From contig NC_133617.1 in the NCBI RefSeq assembly GCF_048593235.1, forward strand, positions 627,358,958 to 627,422,957: 64,000 nt of DNA. The letters are read 5' to 3'. Below the pieces are notes generated by a model. It was not told where the DNA came from. It made no database searches and worked only from the letters and a program-made list of their open reading frames with translations. Below are positions 20,401-31,737 of the stretch, one piece after another; position 1 is the first letter of the stretch, and each line of letters opens with the position of its first letter. This DNA comes from Sminthopsis crassicaudata. Its lineage: Eukaryota. A program made the translations under genes and the position numbers.

Positions 20401-21344
20401 GGACACCCCACCTCCCCAGACCAGTCCTCTGTTCTGTATTCCTGGGGCAGGTGTATTTGCACTGGACCATTCCATACTGCTTCACATGTTCTTATGCATC
20501 CCAAGACCTGAACAGCGCCAGCCCCAAGGGTTGTCCCTCAGGGCCTGAGCTGAGCGCTTTCCTTCTTGCAGGAAGCAGAGTTACTTCGGGTACAAAAAGC
20601 CAGGGAACACGAGCTCGCCTATACCAAGGCCCAGATGGAGCTGGAACTGAGCAAAGCAGAGAAACTGGCTGCAGTGGAGGTTAAAAAGTTCAAGGAGATG
20701 ACGGAGGCTCTCGGCTCCAACACTATCCGGGACCTGGCACTGGCTGGGCCCGAGCTGCAGGTAAGTCAGCTAGGAGAAATGAGGGAGAAGAAATGCCCCA
20801 CTTCAGGTAGCAACAACAGGGACATACTGCAACACAAAGAACCGTCTTCTGTTCTTTCTGAGGGCCAGAGGCTGAGTGTCTTTGGGTGGGAAGGGGAAAA
20901 AATTGCCACTGAGCTGACTGAGAGGGATGACTTCAGACTGCTACTAGAGACAGCCCCAAGGTCCCTTTCAGTTTCAAGGTTACCTGTTATGTGTATAATA
21001 GAAAATCAGAACACCTTTATACAAAGTCCCTGCTATGTGACACTAGGCTAGTTAATTAACTCCCCTTAGCCCCAGAGACTGTTTCTGAAGGGAGGTGGTG
21101 AGGTAAACTTAAAAATTTTTATAAAGGAATTATTTTCCAAGGTCTTAATATTTTATTTCCCTATAATTTTTGTTTCCTTCTCTTATCACAGGTGAAACTG
21201 CTCCAGGGTCTTGGTCTGAAATCAACCCTTATTACAGATGGCTCCACTCCCATCAATCTCTTCAGCACAGCCACTGGGCTTCTGGGGCTTGGGGCACCTG
21301 GGCATCCTACTGAGCTAAAAAAGAAGGAGAACACTGAGCTGTAG
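6687..21344 (+). CDS. MVP: Major vault protein, 5'-partial (12 exons, 762 aa in window)
   Basis: Exons 6687-6810, 7258-7389, 7861-7955, 8591-8827, 8908-9192, 11743-11987, 12093-12290, 12871-13257, 13740-13856, 20042-20168, 20572-20760, 21192-21344(TAG). All GT-AG, phases consistent. Peptides [72 protein letters not shown] and [24 protein letters not shown] are recognisable MVP. The N-terminal exons were not found in 1-6686. Confidence 0.97.
9730..10030 (-). mobile_element. L2 3' fragment
   Basis: aaacatttattaagcacctact...gggatacaaag signature. Confidence 0.6.
12514..12737 (+). mobile_element. Mar-1-type CORE-SINE with RTE/BovB-like tail
   Basis: tRNA-like head, core, then GAGAAGGAAATGGCCAATCACTTCCATATCTCTGCCAAGAAAACCCCAAA. 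Confidence 0.65.
13880..14112 (+). mobile_element. Mar-1-type CORE-SINE
   Basis: Core plus TTTCCTCATCTGTAAAATGAGCTGGAG...TATCTTTGCCAAGAAAATCC tail. Confidence 0.65.
14400..14950 (-). mobile_element. L1 3' end with poly(A) tail
   Basis: T-run 14403-14429 followed by antisense marsupial L1 3' UTR and ORF2 end. Confidence 0.85.
16821..16953. other. Assembly gap (133 N)
   Basis: Run of N. Confidence 0.99.
17427..17476 (+). repeat. (TG)25 microsatellite
   Basis: Read directly. Confidence 0.95.
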
Positions 21345-25739: not shown

Positions 25740-27770
25740 CTGGACACTCCAAGTGTAGTCTTGGGGTAAGGCCTGTACTGAGACTCACCCGGGAAGTATA
25801 GTAGAGCCGAAGGATGGGATTCCCTGTTAGGTCAATAGTTTTATGGCTCTCACTGCCACGGACCACGGAGCTGGAAGGGAAGACATGGGAATATAAAAAA
25901 GTATGACCTCTCCCACTCAAATTCCTACCGGCCCCACTTCCCCCACACATCTTTCTCTTGTTACCATCAGCCACTAACCCTTGGATTCTCTCTGGCCTCT
26001 AAGGAGAAAGGCCCATTCCCCAGTGAGGTGCCTCTAGGACTTCCTCTTTGTACCCTCATTGCAAGTGATCACTAGGACCCCTCTGTAAGTAACTCCGTCA
26101 GTGATGGGGCCAACCCATAATTTCTCAGCCCAGTGGGGTGGGGGTTGTAACCTGTGTAGGTGCAGCCAATGGCTGGCAACGTCCAGACTCATGCTGAGCT
26201 GGAAGAACATGGTGGTCCGAGGGTAGAGCAGAGCTAGGTTGACCAGCAAACACATGGTGGAACATCGATCAGTCAGCATGTCCAGCATTGCCCCAAAACG
26301 GGTTCCTAAATCAAGGTAGAAAGAGAGCCAGCAGTTTAGGATGAAGACAGTGAGAGTGAATGGACCCCACTGCTCTAAACCCACAGATGTGCAGGAACTG
26401 AAAAATTAAGGGTGCTCGTTCTCTCCTGGGCTCAGAGAAGATACAAGTCAGAAACTGCCAGTCCACTGAGATACTAGATCTCATACTGAGATCCAGAGCA
26501 TCTCATTAGGATCTAGATTAGAAGGTGGGGGGGGGAGTGTTCCCTCATGGGGAAGTTAAAGCTAGATTCCTTGCTATCTGTATGACCTTTGCAATGTGTA
26601 CTGAGTCTCTGTCATGTGTAAACAAACACATGGCTTAGAAATGCTGTTCTTGGTCTAAATCCTTATAACTGTCCCAAATATACCCTGAATCCAGCCCAAA
26701 CTGAGGTAAAAGCAGGATAAACGGAATCCAACATCAAAGCCCGAGGTGGATAAAACGTCCCCAACCTAAAGCAAAAATCCAAAACCCGAGAAAGACCCTG
26801 AGCCGCAGCTCTCCACAAGCCTCCAGACTCGGCTGCTCACTAATCCATGGAGCTGATGTAACACGATTTCGGGGCGCCCTGATTTTAGGGGGAGCTTTAG
26901 ATCTAGCAATAACCTAGGCTTGGGAGGAAACTCCCCCGCCAGTGGGACCACTGCTTAGCTTCTGCCTCAGGGTAATCCCCAGAGCAAGCTCAGAGCCCTC
27001 AGGGAGCAGACCACTCCGCCCAGGCAGAAATAATCTAATCAACCAAGCCCTGGAAACCACCTCTTCCGAGCGGAGCCAGAAGTAGCATGGGCGTGATACA
27101 ATCAGGACAAGCTTGTTAGCTAGGGTGATGGGATTATAAGTCGGTGAACTTTGCCCCTAGATCTCATGACACCGGTCTGTGACCCCCAACTTTTGGAGTC
27201 CCCTTTTCAACAAATCCATAGAGGATTCCCCAGGCTTCTCCAAACCTCTTGTTCACTTCATTCCGGGTTTTGCGACTTAACAGCCCGGGCGCTCTGTGCA
27301 GCAGCTAGCAGTTAGCCGGACCCTTCCCGCTTCAGTCCTGCTAGTGCTGAGAGCCGAGCGCGGGGAGGGGTGGGGGCGGGGAGGCAGGGACCCGGGGAGG
27401 GCCCCTCGGAGAGCCACGCCAGGCACCGCTCACCTTGATTCAGGGCCCTGGCCGCGTGTCCGTCGAAGGCGTCCAAGAGCCCGCTAAGCAAGTAGAAGGC
27501 GGAGGCAGTGAACGGGCAGCTGGGCATGAAGTAGAAGGAAACGAGGGCGAAGGCGATCCGCGCGTAACCTGGGACAGGGAGAGGCGGGAGAGAACGGGGT
27601 GAATAAAGAGGCCGCGGGGAGCTCCCGGGCCGGGGCGCCCAAAACCCCGGAGGCACGGGCCGGGGAAGGGAGCACCGGCCCAAGGTCGCGCAAGTTCGGG
27701 GCAGCGCCGGCGCGGGGGTCCACTCACCGATGAGGTTGGGCACGAACAGAAAGATGTTTTCTTCCGGCAT
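25178..27770 (-). CDS. CDIPT: Phosphatidylinositol synthase (CDP-diacylglycerol-inositol 3-phosphatidyltransferase), 213 aa
   Basis: Exons 27770-27728, 27568-27434, 26305-26152, 25870-25789, 25627-25546, 25323-25178(TAA); 642 nt in total. MPEENIFLFVPNLIGYARI start and the CDP-alcohol phosphotransferase motif DAFDGHAARALNQGTRFGAMLDMLTD. Confidence 0.97.
25700..25737 (+). repeat. (AC)19 microsatellite in CDIPT intron 4
   Basis: Read directly. Confidence 0.95.
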
Positions 27771-28420
27771 CTCGGCGAGGGAGATCTGGACGGCTTCTGG
27801 AAACGCGGATGGGGAGCGATCCCCACCTAGACAGCTAAGCAAGCCCCGGTCTAGGGCTACCGAGTCCCCGGCGGCCGCTCCGCCCCTCTCCTCTGTCCCC
27901 CGGGACACCCCGACGCCGACTCTGTGCAGCCGCTTCTTTCGCCCTGGCGCATCAGCAGCTCCGAGGTCGCAGCAGACCCCGCGGCCTCCGCTCCGGGCGG
28001 CACCCAGATGTGCAAGTCCCCCCTGGCGTCCTAGGCATCAGCCGGTGCAGATGTGCAGTTTCCGGCGCCCAGCCGGCCTTCCTCCTGCAGGGATGCAGCT
28101 CCTCTGACGCCGCTCGCTCGGGGCCCAGGGATGGAGTCAAAGGTCTTCCTCTTCACTTTCCTTCCAGTCGTCCCAGCACCGGCTGCGCGGGATAGAGGAT
28201 CCTGAATCCCAGAAATCTGCTCTTCCGCCCGTGCTGACGCAAAACTGGAGGCCAAACAGCGGCTCCGATCCCTTTAAGGCCGGCCCTCTTCCTTTTCCTT
28301 TTCCTTCCTCCTCCCCTCTCCGCCGGCTTGAACCAAGTTCAGAGCGGGGAGGGGGTGACGCGCACAGAGACTAGGAACGAATCGTAAATTCAGAACGGAA
28401 AAAGGTACCGAGGAGAAGTT
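27280..28420. promoter_or_regulatory. CpG island / CDIPT promoter and 5' leader
   Basis: Dense CpG and GC-rich sequence over CDIPT exons 1-2 and upstream; ETS-like CTTCCGCC near 28222. Boundaries approximate. Confidence 0.8.
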
Positions 28421-28859
28421 AGATAAGAACACTATTAACTAATTTTAATTTTTTTTGTGAGTATTTTTCTTAAAAACGAACAAGAGAGACTTATTTTACG
28501 TAACCTACACTTCAAGAACCCACCGGATGAAGCATTTGGTTCAGTCCTAAATCATCCCTTTCCTCCAACTCTGACTCATCCTCTTTTGATCTCAATTACT
28601 TTAGGACGTCAAGGTGGCGGCTAGAGGGTCAGGAAGAAGCTAGAAGGAGATGACTAGAGATCGCCCCCTGGCCCTGGGAGGATATTACTCTTTCAATATT
28701 AAAGCTTATTTGTAGGATAAATAATTCTCCCCGCCCAGCAAGCTGAGTAGTTCTACTGCAGATAATGCTTGAGCGGAGAAGAAAGGGATGCCGGGAAAAA
28801 AGGAAAAGAAAAAAAAAAAAAAAAGATGACTTCGGATTTGACTTCTAGAATTCAAAGGG

Positions 28860-29030
28860 GCTGTCTCCTAGCAACGCGCCGCGGAGCTCCCTCCGCCTGC
28901 GTGGTTCCCGGGGCAACCTCCCCGTGCCACTCTTCCCCTCCCCCTTCCATCCTCCCTGCCCTCTGCGACCGGTAACCATAGCAACAGCAACGGCGGGACT
29001 ACTAGAAAGACCTCCCCGTCTCTCCCCTCC
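28860..29030 (+). promoter_or_regulatory. Small CpG-rich promoter with three RFX X-box motifs
   Basis: GTCTCCTAGCAAC 28863-28875, GTTCCCGGGGCAAC 28904-28917, GTAACCATAGCAAC 28972-28985, plus an extra AGCAAC half-site at 28986-28991. Confidence 0.7.
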
Positions 29031-29404
29031 CGGGCTATAGGCAATTTCTATCCAACATCAGGTCCGGAAAATGGGAAATTGAACCCTTGGGTTTGGGAAA
29101 GGACCCTGAGGACTAGGGGGTGGAGGAGGAGGGAATCAACTTAAGGGACCAAATTGAGGAAAGGGAGGGGGACAGACTGGTGTGAGGGGAAAGTGGAGAA
29201 ATGACCAATGATGGGCTGGATGCCCTAAGGTTTGTGTGTTTATCTGTTGGAAAAAGGAAACCAGAAGGTGGTTTATCCGTACAACTGAAAATAACATCTT
29301 GGGATAGTTCCAGGCCATGCCTGGCCCACACCCTCCAAAGGAAAAAAAAAAGTGGGGCAACTTTCCAACTTAATAGCCCACCTCTCTCTACCTGTTCCCA
29401 GGGG

Positions 29405-31737
29405 ATGGCGTCCAGTCCTTCAGGGCCTCAGGAGAAAAAGGGCACTCTAAATTCACATAATCCCCCTACACCAGCGGTGAGTGCAGTGGGAGGATTGCAG
29501 GGAAAGGGGCAGTTTTCTCCCCCAAAATCAACCATCTGACCCTGGTCCCCTCAACTCTCATCCTTCCTGCAAGGTGTTAACCAGATCTGAGGAGTATTTG
29601 GTCCGTATCAGCACAGAACTTACCAACGAGGCCCTGATGGGAGCCCAATATCCAATAGGTCCTGACCTGCCCAAGGAATTGAAAAAACTGGACCAGGGGA
29701 CTCAGATGTCCCGACACGGTGATCCCTGCTCTAATACAGTGCCCTGAACTCCAGCCCCAAAGTCTACTCCCTAGGAACCCGTTTTGAACCCTGGCAGGCC
29801 CCCCTTTAGGTGCCATTCCCACCTAACATCATACAACCTTACAAGCATCTGTGTTTCATTTCCGTATTCTTGATCTTACTACCCACTCCCTGTGACTAGT
29901 CATTCCAATCCCTTTTTCCCTTTTTGGTCACAGAGACAGGCACTCTTTCTAACTAGGGCCTATGTTTTCAGTGCCGCCAACCACTCGGACCAAGGGCACA
30001 GATACTCGGTGAGAATCCCTGAGGGGAAAGGTCACACCTTAGGGCACTGGGGAATTGAAGAAAGAGAAACAATAGTGTTATATGGGGCTTTTACAAATTG
30101 TTTTATTCATTACAACTTTGTAGGGTTGTGGAGTGCAAATATAATTTTTCCCATTTTACAGATAATAAAACAAAAAAGCTAAGTAACTTGTGAGTACAAG
30201 TGTTATCTTCCCCACTTACAAATAATAAAACAAAAATGCTAAGTAACTTGCTCACAGGTTTAGAAAGTATCAGAACCAGGTCTCGAACCCAATTCTTCAT
30301 GTTCAAATCCAATAGCAGTCTATATTTTACAGGGGTGAAAGGGAAGTAGGAAATGAGAATCCACTTTTGGGAGGAAATATTATGGAGCACTTTAGGTGGG
30401 AAGGAACTTTGAAGAGGGAGTAGCTGGGCTGCACTCCACCATGGAATGCATTTTTACTATGGAATTCATTTTCTTCCTATCCCCATCCTTTCTTCTTCTT
30501 TGTAGTTCTGACAGAAACAGGACCAGAAACAAGACTCATCTCCTGCCATCCAGAGAGATGGTATGTGATAAGATTCTCTTCCAACCCGATGGGTCCTATT
30601 GAGAGCTAGGGATTGTAGAAAGGGATGTGAAAGAGAGATTCTTATGCTTTCTCACTTGAGGGAGGAAACTACAGGAATTCCCCTACCACAGAATAAGAAA
30701 AATTATACTCCAAATCCCAGAAACAAACCAAGCCCTTCTTCTTGCTTGTAATGCTCCAGGTTGAAGATTTTAAAGATGAGAAAGTAAAATTGCTGAAGTC
30801 GAAAGAGAAAGACCTATCCCAACGTAAGCAGGTGAGAAAGAACCAGTTCCCTAACTCTATTCCTGACTAGCACCTGGGAATGGAGTTTTGCATTAATCTC
30901 TATCCCTTCCTAGGTAGAGACTGTACGACAAGAGGACACTCTGGGTGGAACCATGTATTTGACTCCCCGACGGAATGCTCGGAGGTCGACTACAATCCCA
31001 GAAGGCCTCTCTTCCTATCCTTTGAGGAAAGAGCAAGGAAGTATCAAGGTATTTTGATCGTGGCTGCAACATTTTAAGGTAGAGTCAAAGGTACATTAAC
31101 AAGATGGAATTCACCCAAAGAAAGGTAATTAGCATGAGGAGGAGCCTGGAGATCATTTTTATATGTAGCTTTTGAAGGAACTAAGTCTGCCTAGCTTGGA
31201 AGAGAGAAGACTTTGGGACAGATGTGAAACCTGACTTCATAGATTTGAAGTGTTATCGTATGGAAGAGGCAATAGCTGTAATCTGTATTTACTCCAGAGA
31301 GAAGAACTAGACTCAATGGAAGGAAGTGACAGGGAAGGAGATTTCCATTTAGGAAAGATATTCCATCAGAACTGCTCACCAGCTGCCTCAAAAAGCTCTG
31401 GGTTACTAGAAGTGTTGAAGCAAAGACTGGATGACCATCTCTCAAAGAGGTTGTAGGTGAGATTTCTCCGTGGTTGGATGTTAACTCAGATGACTTGTGT
31501 AAGACCCTCTACTACTAAGATTCTGTAGGGGTGCTTTAGGGGTTGGGGCAGGATCTAGGTTTGTGGTGACCAAGGGACAGCAGGTCACAAAAATATTAGG
31601 AGGGACAGAATACTTCCCTCGGAGGCTTTAGAAGCAGACCTTCTTCGACTCCTGACCCAAGAAAGGACCATTTAGGAAAGGGAGAAGGAGTTCACATCTC
31701 TCCTCTCCTCCCTTTCTTCCCTCAGAATGTGGCCTGA
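29405..31737 (+). CDS. Unannotated spliced gene, 151 aa model; candidate orthologue of the CDIPT opposite-strand locus
   Basis: Coding exons 29405-29476, 29574-29718, 29972-30008, 30506-30560, 30914-31048, 31726-31737(TGA). Putative non-coding exon 1 ends at 29061 (CAG|GTCCGG). Exon 2 acceptor ctctctctacctgttcccag, GGGATGG start context, GTGAGT donor. Phases 0,1,2,0,0 join without stops. The exon 4 acceptor choice is uncertain. Confidence 0.65.

Follow-up and report, generated by a model that had tools for sequence, protein, structure and literature searches.

A conserved cluster of RFX-type X-boxes beside the T-ENOL/CDIPTOS gene of the dunnart

Members of the RFX family of transcription factors share one DNA-binding specificity, with the result that they cannot be told apart from the sequences that they bind. 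Among the closest described relatives of the element reported here are the X-box promoters targeted by RFX2 in mouse spermatocytes and spermatids, the targets in question being genes with a ChIP-seq peak between -500 and +50 of the start site in germ cells of P21 mouse testis (Kistler et al. 2015, PMC4498915). In common with those promoters, the dunnart (Sminthopsis crassicaudata) locus is TATA-less and carries an inverted repeat of 13–14 bp of the GTNRCC-N-RGYAAC type near a likely start site, and the syntenic mouse locus, under the name of Cdipt, is itself on the ChIP-seq target list (PMC4498915). The two differ, however, in several ways. In the dunnart, three sites stand in tandem and two of them are off-consensus in the left half, the product of the adjacent gene (T-ENOL) has neither a ciliary annotation nor ancient orthologues, and some eutherian transcripts of that gene start upstream of the sites.

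A second point of comparison is the S-X-X2-Y enhanceosome of the MHC class II genes, which brings together RFX5/RFXAP/RFXANK, CREB and NF-Y. The X box of that module is bound by RFX and the dunnart sites are of X-box type; moreover, the CCTAGCAAC half of X-box 1 resembles the RFX5-type half-site. The likeness stops there. The arrangement that defines the MHC module, an X box followed at fixed spacing by X2 and Y boxes, is not found in the dunnart, where 28700–29200 contains neither a CRE-like X2 box (no TGACG or CGTCA) nor a Y box (no CCAAT or ATTGG), and the locus is not an antigen-presentation gene. A third comparison is invited by the palindrome TTCTAGAA, situated 12 bp upstream of X-box 1. 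This consists of two inverted nGAAn units, the core seen in HSF–DNA structures of the heat shock element (nTTCnnGAAnnTTCn; PMC11059408, PMC8379338), but the canonical heat shock element has three contiguous units and the third is missing from the TTCTAGAA site. The reading that we prefer, and hold with moderate confidence, is that of a conserved RFX-type module that acts for T-ENOL/CDIPTOS and is probably a proximal alternative promoter of the gene in male germ cells rich in RFX2.

The window, by which we mean the whole 64-kb stretch of dunnart DNA that was analysed, had been predicted from its sequence to contain three X-boxes and an extra AGCAAC at 28863–28991, and all four strings are present where expected (Table 1). 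We scanned the window by regular expression with a strict X-box consensus (GTNRCC-N0-3-RGYAAC) and a relaxed one (GTNNCC-N0-3-RGYAAC). Apart from X-box 3, neither strand of the window has any match to the strict form. In X-boxes 1 and 2 the right half (RGCAAC) is perfect and the left half has a pyrimidine where a purine is required, so that each misses by one base the consensus quoted in the original prediction. The relaxed form matches four times in the window, and three of these four matches fall inside 123 bp here. Dinucleotide shuffles of the whole window produced a mean of 1.04 relaxed matches and in no case placed three within 150 bp (0/2000), whilst shuffles of the local 600 bp never gave three sites (0/20000) and gave two in 0.015% of cases. 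The bare half-site RGCAAC is not enriched across the window (41 observed, 53.6 expected), and the signal therefore resides in the local clustering of full sites. Judged on their letters, the motifs are genuine X-box-type sites and their clustering goes far beyond chance.

The fourth relaxed match (GTACCCGAAGTAAC, 20580–20593, minus strand) is isolated and lies within chance expectation. A motif scan found no TATA, CCAAT or CRE motif in the module and no forkhead motif inside the conserved block that surrounds it. Forkhead-like strings were considered as partner sites and rejected on account of their positions, which are outside the conserved module.

Table 1 Features of the CDIPT–T-ENOL interval and of T-ENOL in window coordinates
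Feature	Position	Strand	Remarks
CDIPT CpG island	~27400-28200		GC 0.64-0.70
CDIPT start codon	27768-27770	-	ORF 27312-27908 (- strand) contains MPEENIFLFVPNLIG
TTCTAGAA palindrome	28843-28850	n/a	pair of inverted nGAAn units of heat-shock-element type; 12 bp before X-box 1
Conserved non-coding block	28850-29100	+	holds the X-box module; ~250 bp
X-box 1, GTCTCCTAGCAAC	28863-28875	+	1-nt spacer; one left-half base off consensus
X-box 2, GTTCCCGGGGCAAC	28904-28917	+	2-nt spacer; one left-half base off consensus
X-box 3, GTAACCATAGCAAC	28972-28985	+	strict consensus fit
Extra AGCAAC half-site	28986-28991	+	abuts X-box 3; overlaps CAACGG (MYB-type) at 28988-28993
Putative non-coding first exon 1b	28992-29061	+	provisional start; donor cag/gt at 29061/29062
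First coding exon	29402-29476	+	ATG 29405; acceptor ag 29400-29401; 100% tblastn to XP_074157763.1 residues 1-24
Coding exon	29574-29718	+	splice-site reading and RefSeq protein mapping
Coding exon	29972-30008	+	splice-site reading and RefSeq protein mapping
Coding exon	30506-30560	+	splice-site reading and RefSeq protein mapping
Coding exon	30760-30831	+	splice-site reading and RefSeq protein mapping
Coding exon	30914-31048	+	splice-site reading and RefSeq protein mapping
Last coding exon	31298-31456	+	stop 31454-31456; splice-site reading and RefSeq protein mapping

The region was aligned across six species, three of them marsupials (dunnart, Antechinus and Dromiciops) and three placentals (Sorex fumeus, Bos and a Peromyscus-type rodent, the rodent locus being that which carries the Peromyscus protein). 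Overall, 22% of dunnart columns are invariant, and hypergeometric P values were calculated against this background. The TTCTAGAA palindrome, which is the sole TTCnnGAA in 28700–29200, is better kept than any X-box, all eight of its columns being invariant in the six species (P=4e-6). X-box 1 is found in 6/6 species with 10 of its 13 columns invariant (P=3e-5): it is identical in Antechinus, Dromiciops and the rodent, reads GTCTCCTGGCAAC in Sorex and ATTTCCTGGCAAC in Bos, and the only change in its right half is between A and G, at the R position of the consensus. Within the 12.7 kb of the rodent locus it is the sole relaxed X-box.

X-box 2 lies 41 bp beyond X-box 1 and is still in position, with the GCAAC half preserved, in all of the six species except Sorex, where it has been lost. 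The Dromiciops version is GTTCCCAGGGCAAC, with one spacer change; the rodent has GTCTTTATAGCAAC at this place and Bos has GTTTTTATAGCAAC, a shared pattern (GTYTTTATAGCAAC) in which GT and RGCAAC are kept and CC is lost. X-box 3 is confined to the marsupials, being identical in Antechinus and GTACCCATAGCAAC in Dromiciops (left half GTACCC), and its place in the three placentals is occupied by unrelated C-rich sequence. The extra AGCAAC half-site is likewise restricted to the three marsupials. Antechinus has the X-boxes and the spare half-site in a form identical to that of the dunnart, and all four are present in Dromiciops too. Measured per 50 bp, dunnart–Dromiciops identity is 0.88–0.96 over 28850–29100 and 0.94 in the first coding exon, against values of mostly 0.62–0.78 (0.51 in one case) in the flanking bins. 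The block is single-copy in the window by local comparison (with 27720–27755 masked), and an Rfam search with it returned no family. Directly 5' of the module is an A-rich run (28806–28826) that differs in length among the three marsupials and forms the 5' border of the conserved block.

Lack of conservation of the motifs had been named in advance as grounds for abandoning the original prediction; in the event, X-box 1 proves to be kept across therian mammals. That one site has stayed nearly unchanged in marsupials and placentals suggests a working control element, and X-box 1 is probably just that. The block might, of course, be conserved for some other reason, with the resemblance to X-boxes being secondary: as a 5' leader, or through the binding of an HSF-type factor to TTCTAGAA, an EBF-like factor to TCCCGGGGCA or MYB to CAACGG. 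Among marsupials the whole of 28850–29100 is conserved, beyond the motifs, and the sheep transcript model described below runs across the motifs; between marsupials and placentals, however, conservation collapses onto TTCTAGAA and X-box 1 and does not extend to the whole block. Similarly, conservation is higher in TTCTAGAA than in X-box 1, part of X-box 2 coincides with a near-EBF palindrome and CAACGG shares letters with the extra half-site, yet the substitutions tolerated in X-boxes 1 and 2 (A or G before GCAAC) are those that the RFX consensus permits, and three sites of the same type in 123 bp are not expected by chance. We consider it quite unlikely that the conservation of the block has such a cause.

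The gene that begins beside the module on the plus strand was described in the original prediction as hidden, but is already public. It belongs to the family named 'putative protein T-ENOL' or Cdiptos (CDIP transferase, opposite strand), and its dunnart member is annotated in RefSeq as LOC141561699 (XP_074157763.1, 224 aa), to which the exons in the window match at 100%. The window exons were used singly in searches and the public 224-aa RefSeq protein served for steps requiring the whole length. Models from Antechinus, Monodelphis and Dromiciops have the same exon set, and in a protein alignment the family motifs are present, these being a helix of the form SRSEE[YF]L-R[IV]S-ELT-EAL and the string GTDTRSD[RK]NRTR. 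In all five of the loci compared, T-ENOL is arranged head-to-head with CDIPT, with the module between them; SEZ6L2 is found on the far side of T-ENOL in four of the five, the Dromiciops locus showing only CDIPT beside the gene.

The distribution of the family is narrow. A word-based search with one ORF from the window identified relatives in devil, opossum, wombat and shrew, a search with the shrew protein gave 92 mammalian entries, and a profile search against 1.84 billion representative proteins gave 36 matches below 1e-10, with every named cluster that was examined being mammalian (platypus and echidna included). Human members are also listed among the clusters. Four proteins of bacteria or phages, with PLTRxEQYLNRIA repeats in tandem, likewise matched the profile; these we put down to chance likeness to the TRSEEYLxRIS helix and not to kinship. 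Pfam searches with the exons and with whole proteins found no family, and a search of the PDB by sequence with the mouse and bovine proteins found no chain, the only matches being chance ones to nucleoproteins at E=0.02. Most of the AlphaFold model is disordered (mean pLDDT 54.6); SRSEEYL-RIS-ELTNEAL forms a confident helix, and a second helix, of lower confidence, is at the C-terminus.

What kind of gene might this be? The original prediction was of a motile-cilium or sperm-flagellum gene, and in its full form the proposal would make T-ENOL a structural or assembly gene of one or other organelle, under the control of RFX2/RFX3 as part of the classical ciliary regulon. As far as regulation is concerned, this overlaps with our own reading and draws on the same observations, namely the X-box cluster and the link of the locus to the testis, which consists of the alternative name of the rat protein in UniProt (beginning 'Testicular enolase domain-containing') and the listing of Cdipt amongst RFX2 ChIP-seq targets in mouse testis (PMC4498915). 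It is at the level of the protein that the proposal fails. Core ciliary genes are ancient, whereas the relatives of T-ENOL are found in mammals only, monotremes included. The PDB includes solved axonemes of sperm and cilia from mouse and cow, and yet neither the mouse nor the bovine T-ENOL protein matches any PDB chain. Add to this that the protein falls into no Pfam family and is predicted to be mostly disordered, and that no conserved forkhead site lies near the X-boxes, and a structural or assembly role in cilium or flagellum seems to us very unlikely.

Evidence from transcripts bears on where T-ENOL would start. The CAG/GT donor that closes putative exon 1b is 70 bp downstream of the module and aligns in 6/6 species. 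In sheep, the Ensembl model splices exactly at this donor into the ATG exon (..DFDTSAR/GMSST), having transcribed through TTCTAGAA and both X-boxes. Four mouse RNA contigs have a different structure: they run colinearly with the rodent genome, beginning in the region of Cdipt exon 1 and continuing up to a donor that precedes X-box 1 by ~190 bp, and from this upstream exon (1a) jump to the ATG exon. In the exon 1a isoform, the X-boxes therefore fall within an intron. For these mouse and sheep transcripts the sites are either intronic (mouse contigs) or in the 5' leader (sheep model), and not upstream of the start. The prediction that the gene is regulated separately from CDIPT accordingly turns out to be half right, given that the mouse contigs start on the CDIPT side and that the sheep model reads through the X-boxes. 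Most RFX2 sites lie between -500 and +50 of the start of the gene that they serve, and the conserved donor fits a short exon 1b that would start just after X-box 3, where the original prediction placed it (near 28990–29030).

Three minor points concern the 5' ends of these transcripts. One of the mouse RNA contigs (837–2459) combines the two genes: the coding sequence of Cdipt, complete and in spliced form, is on one strand, and the leader and coding exons of Cdiptos are on the opposite strand. This merger with spliced Cdipt mRNA implies a head-to-head overlap of the two transcripts at their 5' ends. In wombat, a weak match suggests a further 5' exon. Lastly, we had guessed that the mouse leader peptide LLEATV might be encoded by TTCTAGAA-GCAAC; this was rejected, as the DNA differs and the X-box region is absent from the mouse contigs.

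The small CpG patch in which the X-boxes were predicted to lie is real, with a CpG observed/expected ratio of 0.81 and GC of 0.67 over 28863–28991 and a ratio of 0.1–0.2 beyond 29100, and a more accurate description of it would be the distal margin of a CpG-undepleted domain starting from the CDIPT island. The distance from the module to the CDIPT ATG (minus strand, 27770) is 1093 bp, in agreement with the predicted ~1.1 kb. A setting of this sort lends itself to a different explanation, in which broadly expressed RFX1, RFX5 or RFX7 would bind the sites as part of a bidirectional CDIPT/T-ENOL promoter and adjust the expression of CDIPT, T-ENOL or both across many tissues, without any connection with cilia or sperm. 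The members of the family being indistinguishable by sequence, the sites would suit these proteins as well as RFX2; the module is inside the domain that starts at the CDIPT island, eutherian T-ENOL transcripts begin near CDIPT, and partner motifs of the forkhead, CRE and CCAAT types are lacking from the module. In terms of distance, however, the module is far closer to T-ENOL than to CDIPT: set against the 1.1 kb to the CDIPT ATG are ~70 bp to the exon 1b donor and 540 bp to the T-ENOL ATG. The word 'testicular' in the rat name also sits poorly with such a general role.

Published mouse data can be brought to bear on both sides. In Table S1 of Kistler et al. (2015, PMC4498915), Cdipt is marked 'ChIP-Seq yes' for RFX2. 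In Rfx2-/- testis Cdipt shows no differential expression, and the table has no entry for Cdiptos (PMC4498915), so that the RFX2 peak is assigned to a gene unchanged in the knockout, which suits the broad explanation. The obvious candidate for the site beneath the peak is X-box 1, there being no other relaxed X-box in the 12.7 kb of the rodent locus. By analogy with the rodent locus, this X-box would be ~890 bp from the mouse Cdipt ATG, a distance that may exceed the -500 window of the main Cdipt start, and the peak could therefore be elsewhere. We regard the ChIP listing for the locus as supportive of RFX2 binding, but not decisive. In mouse ES cells, a CTCF insulator keeps Cdiptos off, and removal of the insulator induces the gene (bioRxiv 10.1101/2025.05.26.656183); this is behaviour unlike that of a housekeeping gene and, together with the distances and the rat name, makes the broad explanation unlikely in our view. 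Our literature searches found no paper linking CDIPT or Cdiptos with RFX or X-boxes or mentioning the element, and no functional study of Cdiptos, CDIPT-AS1 or T-ENOL, and the supplements of other papers on RFX and spermatids contained no Cdipt entry.

Returning to the reading that we prefer, a proximal alternative promoter for T-ENOL/CDIPTOS in male germ cells, the most likely mechanism is as follows. The old core is the TTCTAGAA palindrome followed after 12 bp by X-box 1, a pairing kept from marsupials to placentals, to which are added X-box 2, kept in weaker form, and in marsupials a third, perfect X-box and the spare half-site. RFX dimers would bind these sites, with RFX2 the most likely factor in male germ cells, and their binding would activate or enhance transcription at a TATA-less start shortly downstream. 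The product would be a short, non-coding exon 1b that splices from its donor at 29061 onto the ATG exon (29402). Probably there is also another start further upstream, within the CpG island that is shared with CDIPT, as is the case in mouse and sheep. It is tempting to go further and to view TTCTAGAA and X-box 1 as a composite switch kept throughout therian history, which in RFX-rich cells (male germ cells and perhaps multiciliated cells) would select exon 1b over the CpG-island start, thereby placing a mammal-specific disordered protein under RFX control, and which marsupials would have strengthened with two further X-boxes. This extension is speculative and we give it only a low probability of being correct.

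T-ENOL/CDIPTOS is an uncharacterised, mammal-only gene in a block syntenic with the human 16p11.2 copy-number region, and in human it is filed as a pseudogene or as a dubious protein. An RFX-type element with such deep conservation, placed at the 5' end of the gene, would be the first concrete handle on when and where the gene is used. The element also offers a compact example of an ancient site reinforced by lineage-specific copies, in this case in marsupials, whilst leaving the knowledge of RFX biology unchanged.

Finally, the 3' end of the gene deserves a remark. The terminal exon used in opossum and Dromiciops has the reading NVARGP... or NMIRGP...; in the dunnart, 31726–31737 reads NVA and then TGA, after which the sequence is still recognisable but is not read. 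The RefSeq models of dunnart, Antechinus and devil end instead in a different exon (REELDSMEG...LSKRL; dunnart 31298–31456). From the different terminal exon and the dunnart TGA, it appears that dasyurids have exchanged one 3' end of the protein for another. Length also varies across mammals: placental T-ENOL proteins are ~117–120 aa long and end soon after the GTDTRSDRNRTR motif, whereas those of marsupials and monotremes are ~184–224 aa long and have two or more further exons. The shorter length of the placental proteins suggests that placentals seem to have lost the C-terminal half.
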